Assembly (NCBI GenBank): GCA_002104905.1
Contig: MCFE01000055.1
Span: 62,001-126,000 of the forward strand
Source: Basidiobolus meristosporus CBS 931.73
Lineage: Eukaryota > Fungi > Basidiobolomycota
DNA length: 64,000 bases
Direction: 5' to 3'
Both the position numbers and the translations under genes were made by a program. Below the pieces are notes generated by a model. It saw only the letters and a list, made by a program, of their open reading frames with translations, was not told where the DNA came from and searched no databases. Below are positions 48,873 through 58,254 of this stretch, in pieces. The number at the start of each line of letters is the position of its first letter. Position 1 is the stretch's first letter.

Positions 48873-50507
48873 ATGAGCTTCGCATTTCTAGATTCCAAAG
48901 AATACTTGCCTAGTCGACAAACTACTGCGCATATATATCTCGATGAATTGGCAAAACTCATCAATGAATATCGCTGGTTTCTTCAGCTTCACGTTGTCGA
49001 CTTTTTTACCCAAAATCACTGGGAAGACTCCAGAATTCCTAATTCTTGGAAACATTTGGAGGAATTCATCTCGGAGGACTATAGTGAACTTATCGATTTA
49101 GCGGCTAAAAACCAAGTACAAGTAGGTTACAGTTTCATCCAACTTTAGCAGATACAAGCGCAAAATGCTTACGCATCTCTGGTTGAAGGAAAATTGGCCG
49201 ACCGAGATAAGCGAGCTCCTAAATACGATTGACGCCTTGAAACTGAATCGTCAACCCACAAAAGATTTAAACTTCCTGAGAAGCGAATTTAGAGGTAGTT
49301 TTTGGATAGCACCACCATATTACAAGATAGAGCGGTGTTTTGACGTACTGTTTGATGATATCCGTAGATGGCACTTGGTTCAATGGGATGACTCCGAAGA
49401 AAAAGCACGAGGTCCCACAAAAAACTATATCTGGTTTTTACACGAAACTAAACTTCTCGGAATTTTAGGTCCCTTTGCTTACAGGATTTGTAGAAACCAT
49501 TGCAAAACAACACTCGATAAACAAGGTAGTCGATGTTGGAGCAGGCCAAGGGTATTTGTCTTGCATGTTAGCGTGCGAGTGTAATTTTGATGTGATTGCT
49601 GTTGACAATGATGAGATCCAGACATGTGGTGCAAAGAAGAGAGTCAACGACATCACGAAACGAATCGACTTTGCGCACAAAAAAGGAGAGGCAACCTCAA
49701 ATGAAATAGGAAAATTCACAGTAGTCAACGAACATGTCAGCATCGAATCATTCAACAGCGTTGTTCACCAGTTTGTAGAAGAGAATGCACCATGGCTAAT
49801 GTGCTCCCTGCATGCTTGCGGTGATCTGTCTGCCACCATGGCCCACATGTTCGTACAATCGGATTCTCGTCTCCTGATTAACATCGGATGTTGCTACAAT
49901 CTTCTGAGCGAGAAATCAGTCAAGCATTCAGATTTTGTGGGCTTTCCACTGAGTAGCAAAATGAAATCAGACAACTATTTTCTAGGGAGAACTCTCCGGA
50001 TGTTAGCTTGCCAAGCCCCACAAAGGTGGTCAAACCAGGAGAATAACGTGGAGTTTTTCAAGCACAATTTCTATAGAGCACTTCTTCAGGTACTTTTACG
50101 CAATATTGCTACTCTAGTTCGTAGTTTAATATCTCTGTTTCTAGTTGATAATGGTCAAAGAAGGATTAGTTAAAGCAACCGACCCACCACCCAAGATTGG
50201 CAAATTACGGAAACATTGCTTTGTTGATTTTGAGGTATATTGCCAGTCGGCTTTAACCAGATTAAACTACCCGTCCGATATCGTATCCGGTGAAACAATA
50301 CTTAAATACTACCAAGAGTACCGACCATTCCATAAACGACTAGCTATTTTCTGGACTATCCGAAGTCTGTTGGCGCCTCTACTCGAAGCACTGGTCCTCA
50401 TGGATCGTGTTTGCTATCTCCTTGAGAATAATTGCGAGGTCGACTTGCTTCCTATATTTGATCCAGTAGAAAGTCCTAGAAATATGGTTGTTCTAGCTCG
50501 CAAATAA
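48873..50507 (+). CDS. METTL25: METTL25/RRNAD1-like class I methyltransferase
   Basis: Motifs HVVDFFT, MTPKKKHE|V, VVDVGAGQGYLS (SAM motif I), SLHACGDLS, IGCCYNLL, RMLACQA, FYRALLQ and LFDP..SPRN are present. Confidence 0.88.
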
Positions 50508-53269
50508 TGGTCATAACCCTTTTTAATGGTAAAATAGACTAATTTTAGAGCTTCTTTATTCAAGCTGGTAGTGCTTATATAATTCTTCACATTTGTGCTG
50601 CCTACCTTGTATAAAATCGAATCAATTGTCCATTCAAATACAATGATAAATTCTAGTATAATATATAAAACTGTTCGCACTTCAAACCAAGCACCACGAG
50701 TCCTTGTATCCTGTAGAGTGTTTGAATTTAGTCTACTTGCGCATTAACACAACCGACCTAAGGGATAAGGTCTGTTGCTCTTGGAAGTTAATCCATTAAA
50801 TATGCTAATTTTGAAACCCGAACTCGTGTAGAACTTTATGAGAAACAAACAAGCATATCCACCTAGAGCTTAGTCTAGGTAAGTGATATGTGTCGACTAT
50901 TTGATACTTGGCGATAATGTTACAGCGACTTTTCATCAGACACTCAAATATGGAACACAATGCCTATTCTCAATCCCACAGAGGAGGAAGATCTTGACGT
51001 ACCTAGACATTTGTCTACTATAGGCTTACATAACAGCACTCAAATGTTGTTCTATTAACCGATTTTTCATTGCAAATTCTCAACGAATTGCTTCTATCTT
51101 TTAGGTACCAGTTTATGAATGGCAGAAGCTGTTATCCAGCTTTTGGCTCTGGTGACATTATTTTCAAAAGGGATTGGTAAACATATTTCAAATACATCAC
51201 CACAAGTGAGAAGAATAACAAGTAATATACCTGGTGACGACATATTTTCATATCTTCATTAATCTTCTTGAGGACCAATTCATCACATGAGTTGCTGGCC
51301 TTTCACGGTCCACGTGGTTTAGACATTGTATGATCATTTGGGGGCTCTACACCATTTAGCAAGTACTATATAAGATATGTTTACTCATGGATTTCAACAC
51401 CTAATTTGAAGTTATAAAAAGTCACGAAAATATATTAGCATTGTGAGATTAGGGAAGGCGTTTTCTGGAATCCAGTCGGAGAACATTGTAAATGATGAAA
51501 AAAGTTCAAAATTCACCAGTGTGTCATACTCACAAAATGATCCATAAAAGAGTAACAATACGACTCAAGTATTTGGAGTAAAGAAATGCGATCTTCAAAC
51601 AAAGATTTCGAGTGCCACAAAGTAGTGAGGAAAAGATAAATCTTTATGGAATTTGTCTGAAATTATGGATGTTTTACTGGCCAAGTATTGTGGAATGCCC
51701 AAAAAAATATCATTATGAATTAGTATCAGGCCTCCAAACGTATTACTGATCTTATGAGCGGTGATTATTCAAAGCTGATATCAATTGCTAATGGAGCCGT
51801 TGAACTACTCTCAACCTAAAACTGACCAAAATCATAATTATGGCCTTTGAAAAACCTACCCTGTATAACTATCATTGTGGCATGGAGATACGAATCCGAG
51901 TTAAGTTTCTAGACATATGTATACCAGATCGACCGGTTTTGACAGAATGTAATCAAGCACCCGAGTATATCAGTGTGTACCTATGTTTCTTCTGTTTGTT
52001 GGATTGCTTTTAAGCATTTCACCCACGAGATTAGGGGGTCTCTAAGTATAATTCCCAGCAACTGCACCCGTTTTAACATTACTTGTGAATATGAGTGTTA
52101 GTAGTAGAGCAAACATGTGGAAGCGAGTTAACATCTAACAACTCGTGATACTATCATGAAAAATAGACATTATGATCTGATGCACAATCTTGAAATGTGT
52201 AGCCAATTCATCTCCTTGTACACAAAGCTGAGGTTTTTAATGGCCATTTGTAGATATTTCGAAAAAAAGACCTTTGACTGTTTGTACCTCAATACCTTTT
52301 GTTGAAATTTGGCGGAGGGATTTCTTTGTAATTAAAATGTTCGAATCTCTATCTGTAGATAGTTTATACCAATGAGTTTGCATCTGTCTATCAACCAGTA
52401 TCTAGCCTCATTGTCATCCTAATTACTTTGAAACATGATTGATTTAAGTTCCGTGTTTTGTCAATGCTTTCAGTCTGGTAACTAAAATTCCACATGACTG
52501 TCATGATACGAGATATGCAACACCATTTTACTTTGTTGTATTCTAATCAGTGTATGTGTCCTATTCCATAGCACCACATAACTCCAACAAATTATATAGA
52601 CATTATTAGTTCGTTGCTGAATCACAAATATCCTTTTGGTCGTTTCGTAGTTTCCGAAAATAAATGCACTTATATATTACCTCCACAGCTTAACGTACAT
52701 AATGATGTGAATTAAAGCAAGACTTCACCAATCAGAACATAGATGAGGTGCACTAGTAAGAAGGTAACGAGGCTGTCGCCAACTGTCTTTTAAGATACTC
52801 AAATGCATTATCCAGCTTTAGGTTATATTCGTTGAAAGCTTACCTCAATTAGGGATAAGCTTCTTAATTCAACCATCAAAGTTGCAAATATATAGCTAAA
52901 CTGGATGAATTCCGTTTGTTTTTTACGTGCATATAAGCAGGGTTTCATGCATTCCTTTATTAAAATACACATTTCTCCTTCCTTGATGAAATCTATTTTC
53001 GTAAAACTTTTTTACACCTTTCCTTCCTGTCCTCATTCGACTAGAGGATAATCTACTGTGACTTGACATCAGTTATCCAAGATTTCTAGATTACTATATA
53101 TTTCTTCTTTGAGACTGTTTCTTTAGAACTCTCGTGAAATTCAGTGATATCTTTATTCCTCCATAACCCATCATAGGTGTAAGTAATTTTAGACTACATT
53201 CATAGTCGAGATAGGATCCACTTTATCATTTTTTTCGCTCACACACCAACCGCGTTCAACTCTCCAACT

Positions 53270-54252
53270 ATGAAATTTCACCTACAGTCGCTGTTAGCCG
53301 CAACTCTGGTGTCAATCACTGAGATTCCAACAATATTAGCAGCAAATCCTACAGTGCGGTTTTCTGAATGTGCATCTAGCTACCTTTACAAAGGAGTAGA
53401 ATACCAGGGATGCACAGAGGCAGACAATCAAGGAAAGCCATGGTGTTTTTTAAGTCGACCTACTATGCAAGACAATTGGGGATACTGTCAGACAGATACA
53501 ATTCCACTTCGAATTGGAAGTTTCAATAGACATCAAGTTGATTGTGACGCTACCTCCGATGTTGGAAACGGCACCCTAGTTCACGGCTGTTTCTCTACAT
53601 TCTCTGGAGATGATAGGGCTTTTTCTTGTTATTCGTCTAAGGTCAATGCCTTAGTAGCATGCACTAGCAACAAACTAGGTAACGTGTTGGTTGACGAAGC
53701 ATAAATATGGGAGAATATGTTGATATTAATTATTATTTGGTATATTTAGATCCATCATTGCCTAAAAAACCACTTTCTGCTAATCCTTCGGATTCATCCG
53801 TCTCTAGTGAAATGTCAAGAGAAAAAGCCAATGCTAGAGAGAATTCTACTAATAGGATCTCGGCAGGGGTGATTGGAGGAGTAGTTGTTGTAGTTGTTGT
53901 AGGGGTTGCTGGCCTCGCCATGTTGATGTATCGTCGAAATCAGTTGAAAAGGAAAGCAATCATGCAACTTTCCCGTAGTCATGGGATCGGCTTAGAACTC
54001 AACATGTTGGAAGAAACTAAATTACCACTGCCTCATATACAGAAAACCTACACTGTAGTTAGCACCTATACGCCGACACTTGGTGATGAACTGGAAATAT
54101 ATCCAGGAGACAAAGTCACTGTGATAGTCGAGTACGATGATGGCTGGATACAAGGAATTAATGAGACTCGTGGGCGTGTGAAAGGAGTGCTCCCGAAGCA
54201 TTGTGTGGATATGATTTCCAGGAGCACTTCCCCAGATCCGGCAAATCCTTAG
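53270..54252 (+). CDS. Single-pass surface protein: signal peptide, fibronectin type II-like domain(s), S-rich stalk, TM, cytoplasmic SH3
   Basis: Exons 53270-53678 and 53750-54252 join in phase. FN2-like CASSYLYKGVEYQGCTEADNQGKPWCFLSRPTMQDNWGYC, TM VIGGVVVVVVVGVAGLAMLMY followed by RRNQLKRK, and SH3 YTVVSTYTPTLGDELEIYPGDKVTVIVEYDDGWIQG...GVLPKHCV. Confidence 0.88.
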
Positions 54253-55001
54253 GAAGAACCTCAAACCTTCCTTATAACGAGATATGTTTGATCAATCGAT
54301 ATTCTCGAGTCTATCAGACCAGCCGACGGCTACGCTTGAATTTCTACATTTGGTCCGTCGCGCCCTTCCTTTGCTACTATCGTAGCATAATGTTATATTC
54401 TCCTAGTTTAGTCGTAGATGGAGGCCCGGAGAAATCCCCTCAAGATTAAGTTTTAATATTTCCAAATCGAAGAAGTCACCTTCATTTGATTCAAATGTAC
54501 ATCAAGAAACCAACGCACAAAAGCTTTTAGAGTATTGTATAATAATTTGATTTGACGAAAGTCACAGTAAATAGTATGAAATAAGGCTTCGCATCATACC
54601 TCATTTTAGTTGGACAAAGGATTTGGGAAAGCCACAAGGTGATCCATTGGTCAAGGGCCAGGAATTTAGATACGGCTCAGGATACCTACTACTAGAGAGA
54701 GTTGGTGTTATGTATTGGGTGGAGGACGCTAGTGCTAAAAAAAATGTCAAGTAGTATCAATCGTGGTAGCCTTTTAGGGCTATCTACACCATCTTGTAAC
54801 AGTAGCAAAAGGAATGACCGCCTGTTTATGTGTTAGCATGAACAGAACTAGCTCCACAATAACTCAATGAGGAACTCTGTGGAATACCTACTTTGACCAT
54901 TTTTTTATGCACGCCCAAGCCTGGCAGTAGAATAGGGTCATGAGTGAAGGGTGTGGCTTCAGCCTAATAATTTCATCGAGATGCTTGCGCCTTCTTGTCA
55001 T

Positions 55002-55616
55002 AAAAACAAATATATTGATCCGAATATCAAGGAAATATTCATACTCTTCTATTCTATCAGATAAATTTCAGTTGCATTAAAATAGAAAGGTAAATGGGCG
55101 CAAATCACGAATGTAACGCCCAGCGAATATACGATACAGTAAATATTATTCCAACTCCCCGAACTTTGAATCGCGACCTTGGATAATAGTTCAGTGAGTG
55201 GCTCAAAGTTTCAAGAACATTAGTTAATTGTGCAACATCCTCCTTTAAGGACACACCGCGATCTTCCATAAATTGCAAGATTTTGGAGGAGCCAGTGTAT
55301 CCGGGAGAATCGATATAATAGAACTTACAGTGATATTTGATGCTGGTTTCTAACGTTGTTGACTTGTCTGTCGATGCATTCTGCCGTAGGAAAGCCATTG
55401 AGCAGTAGTCGCTAAATTTAGGATCCTCGGTGTAAGCTTGTATTGTGGCGAGTGGTAAAAGGTTTGATTAAACCCCTCTTCGTTATTTAAGATTGTCACA
55501 GGCCCGCTTGCAAAGTAGTTCAGTGGATACAGCGTCCATTGAAGGCTTCAACGAGGGATATTCCACCAGGAATTTATCCAACACAAGTCTCCGAGCACAT
55601 AAAGATCGTATTGAAG
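55002..55616 (-). pseudogene. Septin-like P-loop GTPase relic
   Basis: Ordered, frameshifted motifs: YDLYVLGD.CVG*(K) (G1-like, 55571-55616), FYYIDSPGY (G3-like, 55297-55320) and DIRINIFVF (akin to septin DxRVH.CLYF, 55002-55028). Confidence 0.4.
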
Positions 55617-57227
55617 ACCAAAATATTTGGGGTAGGTCATGGATTTAGACCATTCATGACGAGGGCATTCTCAGTCCATGAATTAATTCGTGAATAACCA
55701 CAAACAATAAATCACTCTGACCCCGTGACGCTAACTCATCTAAATTTGCCATTTACAAATTAGCGATATGGGTAGGGAGATCGCCTGATTTGGCATATTA
55801 ACCTTAAACCAGAAATCCACGTCAGAATTAAATGAGGCAATGATGTCAGTTGTACCGAATTTTGGATTCTTTTTATATCCTCTTGAATGAAGTAATGATT
55901 GTTTGAGCAGGCCCGGCGCCCCCTTTTGTAAATTTATTAATATATTAGAATTAAATCGACCTGATCTGGATGAGTATTATACCTAGAATACAAAAGTTGT
56001 TGTTGCATCCTCGAAACTCTTTGTGAATGGAAATAAATGAGGCGTTGATCACCCCGCGAAATACCGCAACATTCGAAATGATTTGAAAAGTAGCGCCAAA
56101 AACAGCTTTCACTGTTTCCATTTCTGGGGTTTGGCGTTGTATTGGAGCTAGCGCTTCACGGTTGGTTCGCCAGGATACAAAACAAGTTCGTCATTTTCTT
56201 ACCAGTATACTTTAGTTTGCATTCCACGCGAACCTTATGGCCTTTCTACCAAGTCTTGAGTGGTTATGGCATGTTTGTAAAAACTTGAGGCGTGTTGTGT
56301 AATTCAGTCTACAACAAACCCGGCGAAGGATAGAAAAGCGAATGCCGATAGCAAATCGGAGAATATCGTGCGCACCAATAGAGAGGCAATTGAACTTTAC
56401 AAATGCAACTGGACTTTTACTTGTTGCAAACGTAGGGAAGGAACTGTGGTGGAACGAATTATTTATAAGTAACGTTCACAGCACAGATCTCATTCAGGGC
56501 GATCACTCACGGTATTACTGGACTCTTTCACTTTGGGTATTTTCTGGATACTATTTTGCGGTAAACAGTAGAGCTAGTGGATGCAAAGTCAGCCTCACAC
56601 CTGATAGGATTGAGCTATCGAACCGAAACTATATGACAATAGGCCTCCATATTTTAAATAACTAGTCCATTGGCCAGGACTTTCTGGAGGTTGTATGGCC
56701 TGGTAGTGGAACCATATCTTGAACATAGCAGATACTCGTAATTGTGGATGGTTGTCAAGAGGCCTCCATCAGTTATCTTGTGTAACTATCCATGTTTACT
56801 CCTTTACTGTTGGTGCAATCCATATTTGCACGATGCTAAATATAACGAGCAGGGAACTATTTCAGCAAATGCTAAAAATATGTTTCGGGATACCCGAAGT
56901 GGAATTATTGAATAAGAATCTCATTAAGAGTTTGGCGTTTGAGTGTTACCTAATGACCAACAATTAACCAGAATTTTCTCATTCAAGTTTTAGGATCTTT
57001 TACAGTTCTTGGATCTCCTTCAATTAATCACTCCTTACGTGCCAATCAATCAGCTATTCTTAAATTAATAGAATGGAGTATACTTTCTTAAGGACATGTA
57101 AGAGGCCTTTCTCCGGTACCTACTTAAATCGGATTTGTTCTAATTTTGGGTCCTATTCCGTAACCAAGCACTGTTTTTTTATAAACCTCCAGGACGACAC
57201 TCAAATCCGTCTTGTCTTCACCTAACC

Positions 57228-58254
57228 ATGTCAAATTATTTTAATGAGCCACTGCTAACTTCTGAAGAGGGCTCTTTCAAAGCGCAAAAAACTAGGAGCC
57301 CTCGTTCCCCAAGATTTCTCTTCGTCCTACTCATAGTGTTATTTACCTGTGGTGTATTCTATATCGGCTTTTACCACACAAAAGGGGTAAGTCCGCAGTT
57401 GGCTTTTCTTGCTGGTAAGCATTTTATGTTTCATTTTTGGAGATTTAAACCGACCCACTAAATCTATACTAGAAACCACTGAATATCAGTACACCATTGT
57501 GACTGCAGCCAGCGCAAATCACTTTTGCCCCCTTCAAAGTTATCTCTATACTCTTCAAGACACTCTTCGGTTCATGCCGTTATCACAGCAGCCAAGGATT
57601 GTTGTGTATGACTTGGGAATAGGCGACGGGCAGAGAGTGACGCTCAAAGAATTCCAGAAGCAAGGTTATTTCCACGAGCTGATTCCTTTTGACTACACCG
57701 AGTATCCATCTTTCTGGAATGTTCATATCAACAGAGGTGAATATGGTTGGAAAACCGGAATCATATATGAAGCGGCGCAGCGTTATCCTGGTGTAATCCT
57801 CTGGATGGATTCTGGTGATCGTGCCTTCCCCCACTTCCTCTTGGATGTAGTGAACTATGTGAAGAAGTTCGGTGTCTTCAGTCCACCCAGTAAAGGAACC
57901 ATTCCTGACTTTACCCATCCTGGGATGATAGAGTATTTCTCGGACTCTATGGAGCATTACACCAAGTTTGTCAACTGCAATGGTGCCTTTATTGCTTTCG
58001 ACTCGGAGAATTCAACCGTTATGAATAACGTTATCCGACCATGGGCTCAGTGTGGCCTTATTAAAGACTGTATCGCCCCAGTTGGCTCTAGTAGGGCCAA
58101 CCATCGACAAGACCAGGCAGTATTCACCTATCTCATGGCAAAGAGCGGATTCCAATGTCGTTTCGACGGACTCACAGGGTTGTTGACCCATCTTGATAAG
58201 GACTGCAAAATTCAAATTGAGAACCATTTGAAGCGAAAACAACAGACGTATTGA
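57228..58254 (+). CDS. Type II membrane protein with DUF1647-like / glycosyltransferase-like luminal domain
   Basis: N-terminal signal-anchor FLFVLLIVLFTCGVFYIGFY and one intron (~57388-57472). Motifs TIVTAASANHF, IVVYDLGI, FDYTEYP.F, YGWK..II, ILWMDSG, C....CIAP.GS and HRQDQAV follow. Confidence 0.75.

Follow-up and report, generated by a model that had tools for sequence, protein, structure and literature searches.

Gene structure and public annotation

The window analysed here is a stretch of 64,000 nucleotides from Basidiobolus meristosporus CBS 931.73, identical to GCA_002104905.1 MCFE01000055.1, and it carries the two-exon gene of this study on its plus strand. The list of open reading frames contains two adjacent plus-strand frames, 53270-53704 and 53707-54252, which lie in different reading frames, the first ending with a stop codon at 53702-53704. 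This interruption of the reading frame is absent from the preliminary description of the locus. When a 71-nt GT..AG intron in phase 1 (53679..53749, plus strand) is removed, the two frames come together in phase 1, with a product of 303 amino acids and a single stop. Exon 1, taken from the list of open reading frames (53270..53678, plus strand, 409 nt, phase-1 end), encodes the signal peptide and the whole disulfide-rich head of the ectodomain, and exon 2 (53750..54252, plus strand) encodes the protein from the stalk onward, including the transmembrane (TM) helix and the SH3 domain. A tblastn search with the paralogues P0001 and P0004 gave exactly two blocks, 53270-53674 and 53749-54246, and in the gene annotated for the paralogue P0001 the homologous codon is interrupted by an intron of 68 nt, likewise in phase 1. 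The splice model of the predicted 303-aa protein is therefore based on homology. The exons were searched separately and the joined protein was used for the checks of frame, length, cysteine positions and hydropathy.

The public annotation at this site, K493DRAFT_346613 (P0006), is a protein of 101 amino acids which starts at 53920, inside the TM helix. This model loses the final SH3 strand through a 3' intron and gains 12 unrelated residues instead, its exon ending at 54456. Since every relative keeps the unspliced ending 'FPKHCV', we regard the public model as truncated; judged by this conservation, all relatives support the longer 303-aa model, which corrects the annotation. The neighbours, a Methyltransf_32 gene upstream and an unknown open reading frame downstream, gave no hint of function. 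The upstream neighbour (49475-50507, plus strand) contains the Methyltransf_32 domain (E 5e-19) and is probably a multi-exon gene, with no visible connection to the receptor gene. The stretches flanking the gene, 50510-53260 and 54260-57400, contain no open reading frame of at least 90 amino acids apart from two short ones.

Domain organization of the predicted protein

The order of elements along the 303 residues is signal peptide, fibronectin type II (FN2) module, second four-cysteine module, Ser-rich stalk, TM helix, stop-transfer and SH3 domain. The signal-peptide-like N-terminus (53270..53344, plus strand, as are all features below; residues 1-25) has a hydrophobic core, small residues before NPTV and a hydropathy of 1.65. 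The same layout of the start, read from sequence and hydropathy, is found across all relatives. Module 1 (C34-C73; 53369..53488) has cysteines C34, C48, C59 and C73 and is followed by module 2 (C92-C131; 53543..53662), a degenerate module predicted to have the FN2 fold, with C92, C107, C120 and C131. The extracellular Ser-rich stalk (53750..53862, residues 137-174) is about 38 residues long, with 27% Ser plus Thr and one NST sequon. It leads into a single Val/Gly-rich TM helix (53863..53931, approximately residues 175-197), where the Kyte-Doolittle profile peaks at 2.83 at residue 177, and one such peak is present in every relative. The basic stop-transfer RRNQLKRK (53932..53955) was read from the sequence. 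The cytosolic SH3 domain (54049..54210, approximately residues 240-290) carries the signature STYTPTL.DEL ... EYDDGW ... PKHC, and a C-terminal tail of 13 residues without a KR.SS motif, together with the stop codon, completes the gene (54211..54252). From the signal peptide, the one TM helix and its basic flank, a type I topology is expected for the protein. The signal peptide, Ser-rich stalk, TM helix and basic stop-transfer of the preliminary description were thus all recovered at their positions by sequence and hydropathy.

Module 1 is a fibronectin type II module

The four-cysteine module at 53369-53488 had been proposed to be FN2, and its sequence, the family profile and the predicted fold agree on this. 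Against Pfam fn2 (PF00040) module 1 scores 24.3 bits, above the cut-off of 22.2, with E 3e-05. A module-1 family profile built from 22 fungal copies matches the FN2 modules of MMP-9, MMP-2 and fibronectin with E values from 4.8e-21 to 7e-12; per module the i-E against animal FN2 is about 2e-6, and the span from C1 to C4 aligns with one gap of a single residue. The AlphaFold model of the ectodomain, made with an alignment of 12 sequences, has a pLDDT of 90.8 and a pTM of 0.79. When it was compared with 48,161 PDB representatives, 19 chains reached Z>=2 and all of them contain FN2: 7 align on model residues 1-54, 11 on residues 54-111, and fibronectin 1-2FnII extends across both halves. PDC-109 matches with Z 3.7 and an rmsd of 2.5 A over 42 residues, the absolute Z being low because the module is small. 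Foldseek searches with the models of the ectodomain and of module 2 gave no match at E<=0.001, with FN2 entries heading the meaningful rows. We conclude from sequence and predicted fold that module 1 is a genuine FN2 module.

How much of the ligand pocket has been kept? The window copy retains five of the seven aromatic core and pocket positions (FPF, Y.G, Y..C, WC, loop Y, W.[FY]C). It has other residues in place of the first 'FPF' Phe and of the loop Tyr, and its pocket is not fully canonical. The full 'CKFPF.YN' start is kept in the relatives from Zoopagales.

The possibility that module 1 folds in another way, like a kringle or a WSC domain, had been raised beforehand. It is neither: the module passes the fn2 cut-off and the chains that it matches are FN2 chains. 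Kringle (PF00051) reaches 16.6 bits against a cut-off of 34.3 and aligns with the C-terminal half only; kringle structures rank below FN2, and in the search with the module-1 profile kringles appeared only as partial matches. The Pfam search returned no WSC domain at E<=1.

Module 2 and the disulfide pattern

Module 2 is a different case, in which fold and sequence do not give the same answer. By hhalign its match to module 1 has a probability of 1.5% and its match to the module 2 of bacteria one of 11.6%; no Pfam match was found in 22 family members, nor any match among PDB sequences. Folded alone, it gave a model with a pLDDT of 85.9. In the comparison of this model with the 48,161 chains, 40 reached Z>=2, of which the top 19 are FN2 and the other 21 are kringles, with nothing else in the list. 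The FN2 matches have Z from 3.6 to 4.9 and rmsd from 2.3 to 3.1 A over 44-50 of the 54 residues (38 for PDC-109); such low absolute Z values are to be expected with a module of 50 residues, and what counts is that no other fold appears among the matches. A second line of argument is positional. The bacterial module which occupies the same place as fungal module 2 does match Pfam fn2, and it matches fungal module 1 at 95% by hhalign. As this counterpart can be recognized as FN2 by its sequence, it connects fungal module 2 with FN2 through its position. On the structure models, module 2 is an FN2 fold without the FN2 sequence signature, and therefore the head of the ectodomain is predicted to be a tandem FN2 pair. 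The degenerate four-cysteine module described earlier is indeed present, with C92, C107, C120 and C131, although it now appears by modelling to be an FN2 fold itself.

The cysteines accord with this picture. All eight are invariant in 12 relatives. In a set of 21 units, taken from fungi and a single bacterium, six cysteines do not vary, and C2 and C4 are absent together in the Piptocephalis protein P0184 and in the bacterial unit. Their joint absence is repeated in 12 further bacterial units, and never is one of them missing alone. This constancy, together with the matches of the module-1 profile to animal FN2 modules, exceeds what chance would produce. The paired loss of C2 and C4 matches what the 1-3/2-4 disulfide map of FN2 would predict. 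Taken with the models, this suggests that the head is compact, with four disulfides, and consists of a canonical FN2 module followed by a degenerate one.

The SH3 domain

The C-terminal SH3 domain noted in the preliminary description is well supported, with 38.4 bits for SH3_9 (cut-off 30) and 25.6 bits for SH3_1 (cut-off 22.9). It contains 20 columns that are invariant in 17 zygomycete relatives from both phyla. The peptide-binding groove retains the central Trp and the Pro, both invariant across the family, as well as the second Tyr of ALYDY. Ser takes the place of the first ALYDY Tyr, and an invariant Cys that of the 'SNY' Tyr. Since Ser and Cys stand in place of groove tyrosines, the peptide preference of this domain may be unusual, as is that of Fus1p. 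The window copy has a Leu at an SH3 position where Phe is nearly invariant. The best PDB relatives of the domain (p47phox, vinexin and sorbin) are generic, and so we assign it to no pathway.

Two short motifs were observed near the domain. Just upstream of it, at 54016-54033, the Basidiobolus paralogues have 'KLPPPH' and the window copy has 'KLPLPH'. Judged by its spacing, this proline motif is too close to the SH3 domain for binding in cis, and could be a ligand in trans. At the C-terminus, a KR.SS motif followed by an aromatic residue or Met is conserved in the relatives from Mucoromycota and Entomophthorales and is absent from the copies of Basidiobolus and Zoopagales; its sequence looks like a kinase site.

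Distribution of the family in fungi

A word search with exon 2 recovered the B. meristosporus paralogues P0001 (80%) and P0004 and the B. ranarum proteins P0002, P0003 and P0005, as well as metatranscriptome proteins of about 300 amino acids with fn2 and SH3. The count of paralogues called for in the preliminary description thus gives several in the B. meristosporus genome. A further divergent two-module copy from the same species, P0141 (K493DRAFT_75840, 171 aa), is annotated without a TM helix or SH3 domain and could represent either a secreted protein or one more truncated gene model.

With the head profile, 993 representatives were found at E<=0.001, most of them animal proteins with multiple FN2 modules. 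Few matches span the whole two-module unit, and those listed are proteins of Entomophthorales, Basidiobolus and chytrids and a bacterial PhoD protein. Entomophthora muscae, Neoconidiobolus thromboides and Conidiobolus coronatus have the FN2 pair together with TM and SH3. The FN2-TM-SH3 arrangement is also present in the Zoopagales Syncephalis plumigaleata and Piptocephalis, with which the metatranscriptome clade groups. The chytrids Cladochytrium replicatum (P0098) and Nowakowskiella sp. (P0113) have another arrangement, in which three tandem eight-cysteine units precede one TM helix, and the short tail has no SH3. In the tree each unit groups with the one at the same position in the other species, which argues that the triplication is older than the Cladochytrium/Nowakowskiella split.

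The search restricted to the SH3 domain gave 60 proteins. Their sources are without exception fungi of zygomycete grade (Mucorales, Umbelopsis, Endogonales, Zoopagales, Entomophthorales and Basidiobolus), with none from Dikarya. All 60 are named hypothetical or 'SH3 domain-containing'; the databases also have automatic fn2 labels for some members of the family. Identity to the SH3 core of the window copy is 51-87% across zygomycete fungi and 51-68% in Mucoromycota. Pfam fn2 occurs in the members from Zoopagomycota only; the ectodomains of the Mucoromycota members are mucin-like or weakly VSP-like and Cys-rich. Because the SH3 domain is kept while the ectodomains differ, we regard TM-SH3 as the conserved core of the family and the FN2 pair as one of several heads. 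As far as seen in these sequence searches, the family is confined to zygomycete-grade fungi, in which it would represent a widespread, uncharacterised TM-SH3 signalling core with interchangeable ectodomains.

Is this architecture new? Our literature searches found no description of a fungal FN2 domain or of an FN2-TM-SH3 family, and no characterised member. The earlier statement that no fungal FN2-TM-SH3 protein had been described therefore holds for the literature, although the architecture is conserved in Zoopagomycota and its members are already in the databases as hypothetical proteins. The family is widespread in fungi, as the preliminary description had considered possible, but it is not characterised. 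What we have here is a set of known domains in an undescribed, conserved architecture.

The two-module unit in bacteria

A shape search of the ESM Atlas with the ectodomain led to a cluster of Pseudomonadota proteins with PhoD and fn2 (TM 0.80 over 101 residues, rmsd 2.1 A). When the fungal profile was compared with the bacterial protein P0118, which lies on a bacterial contig, the whole unit was matched with E 6e-17. In a genome scan with the full PhoD protein, approximately 40 species representatives showed the two-module unit, then PhoD, then a third FN2 module; an example is the locus L009:1546-1848, one of the set L004-L048. The carriers are marine and belong mostly to Pseudoalteromonas, with others in Thalassomonas, Microbulbifer, Bermanella and Alteromonadaceae. 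A genome scan with the bacterial two-module unit alone as query found no locus. The bacterial PhoD phosphatases share with the fungal head the two-module unit, its 'PxV.Y..C' start and its cysteine pattern, but in them the unit is fused to an enzyme, whereas in fungi it is fused to TM-SH3. The state of the two modules is also reversed: in bacteria module 1 is without C2 and C4 and module 2 is canonical.

In an unrooted tree of 39 two-module units, the bacteria (100/100), the chytrids and the Zoopagales were recovered as groups. The bacterial branch, with a length of 2.17, stands beside Basidiobolus (split 96/87). Since this branch is long and the tree has no root, we infer neither a donor nor a direction, and the position of the bacterial units beside Basidiobolus could reflect gene transfer or long-branch attraction.

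FN2 is usually treated as an animal module. The present data place it in fungi and bacteria as well, as the head of a receptor-like family in Zoopagomycota, as a repeat in chytrids and as a fusion partner of PhoD. A study of domain origins puts Fn2 at the chordate node (PMC1654190). The proteins described here offer a concrete family in which the origin of the FN2 and kringle folds can be traced.

Proposed function and alternative explanations

We favour, as the probable reading of the whole, a 303-aa type I plasma-membrane protein with an FN2 pair, a TM helix and an SH3 domain which acts as a surface receptor or adaptor. The role of cell-surface receptor or adaptor would be divided between the two ends of the protein. 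Outside, the FN2 pair would bind an extracellular ligand by means of the aromatic pocket still largely present in module 1. Inside, the SH3 domain would hold one conserved cortical partner at the membrane. Contact at the surface might in this way be coupled to polarity, actin or kinase scaffolds, like in the single-pass fungal sensors and Fus1p. Such a protein would be a candidate surface sensor in fungi which live in animal guts or kill insects.

Could the protein instead watch over the fungus's own wall? In a sensor of wall or surface stress like Wsc1 or Mid2, a glycosylated stalk would carry a Cys-rich head that probes the wall, and the tail would recruit signalling proteins. The Cys-rich head, Ser-rich stalk, one TM helix and cytosolic tail mirror type I sensors such as Mid2p (PMC2063912), and the Mucoromycota orthologues have mucin-like ectodomains of the kind typical for wall sensors. 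However, the protein lacks a WSC domain, its stalk is short, at about 38 residues with 27% Ser plus Thr, binding of wall polysaccharides is not known for FN2 modules, and the tail is an SH3 domain and not one that binds Rom2. We consider this role rather unlikely.

The bacterial proteins suggest another reading, in which FN2 followed by a degenerate FN2 is an ancient microbial module that passed between marine Alteromonadales and early fungi, and the fungal receptors sense a ligand of the phosphoester or choline type and not the animal matrix. We propose this ligand as an alternative because the bacterial unit adjoins an enzyme of the phosphodiesterase type; for the FN2 pair it is an analogy to be used as a lead only. 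The reading as a whole seems rather improbable to us. If it were true, animals would not be the inventors of FN2, and the fungi would have a new receptor class with a defined ligand chemistry.

Next comes a sensor or adhesin for the host matrix, whose FN2 head would bind animal collagen, gelatin or phosphocholine lipids during colonisation of the gut or of insects and would signal through the SH3 domain. This is the idea of the preliminary description, where such a sensor was coupled to polarity or MAPK machinery. Module 1 is a true FN2 module, its nearest structures are those of the gelatin-binding MMP-2, MMP-9 and fibronectin and of the phosphocholine-binding PDC-109, and many carriers (Basidiobolus, Entomophthora, Conidiobolus) are associated with animals. 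However, FN2-TM-SH3 is found also in the mycoparasites Syncephalis and Piptocephalis, and the two-module unit in the saprobic chytrids Cladochytrium and Nowakowskiella and in the PhoD proteins of marine bacteria. These mycoparasitic, saprobic and bacterial carriers weaken the case for a ligand specific to animals. The Mucoromycota orthologues, moreover, keep the SH3 domain without any FN2, and two of the pocket aromatics are replaced in the window copy. We judge a host-matrix sensor to be unlikely.

A factor in fusion or polarity like Fus1, which its cytosolic part would keep at a polarised site and which would act in gametangial or hyphal fusion, appears distinctly unlikely. The overall plan is that of Fus1p, a type I protein with an O-glycosylated ectodomain and an SH3 domain near the C-terminus (PMC2063912), and the SH3 domains of both depart from the canonical groove (PMC2756588). 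Among the look-alikes of the language model (Atlas) there is also a cluster of Ascomycota SH3 proteins of about 510 amino acids, at 0.86 and so below 0.9, which is a lead only. Against this, no relative was found in Dikarya, and the cytosolic part has about 105 amino acids compared with 416 in Fus1p.

Finally, that the window copy is a decaying or unexpressed redundant paralogue with no function of its own is very improbable: the genome does contain several paralogues, the public annotation here is only a 101-aa fragment and Leu stands at the SH3 position where Phe is nearly invariant, but the reading frame is open in the two exons, which are joined by canonical splice sites in a conserved phase, and the copy retains 8 of 8 cysteines and all 20 of the invariant SH3 columns.

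Comparison with known systems

Our preferred reading of a surface receptor or adaptor can be set beside several families of known proteins. The animal proteins PDC-109/BSP, fibronectin (1-2FnII) and MMP-2/9 have modules that are like module 1 in sequence and fold, and in PDC-109 and fibronectin the FN2 modules are also in tandem, as in the fungal head. These animal tandem proteins are secreted, whereas the fungal protein would be anchored in the membrane and carries SH3, and its module 2 is without their FN2 sequence signature. In contrast to animal FN2, the type found in fungi and bacteria has 'GCT' and 'PWC' motifs which lean towards kringles.

The members of the mannose-receptor family (Endo180/uPARAP, PLA2R, DEC-205 and MR) are likewise type I receptors with FN2 near the N-terminus, and the FN2 module of Endo180 is among the best fold matches of fungal module 2. 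However, these receptors have very large multi-lectin ectodomains, endocytic tails and a single FN2 module, are without SH3 and occur in animals only. The Wsc1/Mid2 sensors are alike in their Cys-rich or glycosylated ectodomain, one TM helix and short signalling tail, and the functional analogy is plausible; they differ in the WSC domain, which is absent here, and in the tail, which here is a folded SH3 domain.

The preliminary description placed TM plus SH3 with the fungal adaptors Sho1 and Fus1. For Sho1, four TM segments would be expected before the SH3 domain, and here there is one hydrophobic helix besides the signal peptide, so that this half of the comparison falls away. The type I plan of Fus1p fits better. 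Fus1p of S. cerevisiae is a type I membrane protein with an SH3 domain near its C-terminus (PMC2063912), and this SH3 domain has a proline-free specificity profile (PMC2756588). It has no folded Cys-rich head and its cytosolic part extends over 416 amino acids. Compared by layout, it shares with the predicted protein a single-pass type I arrangement, a Ser/Thr-rich extracellular part and a cytosolic C-terminal SH3 domain, and by this analogy Fus1p is the nearest described layout.
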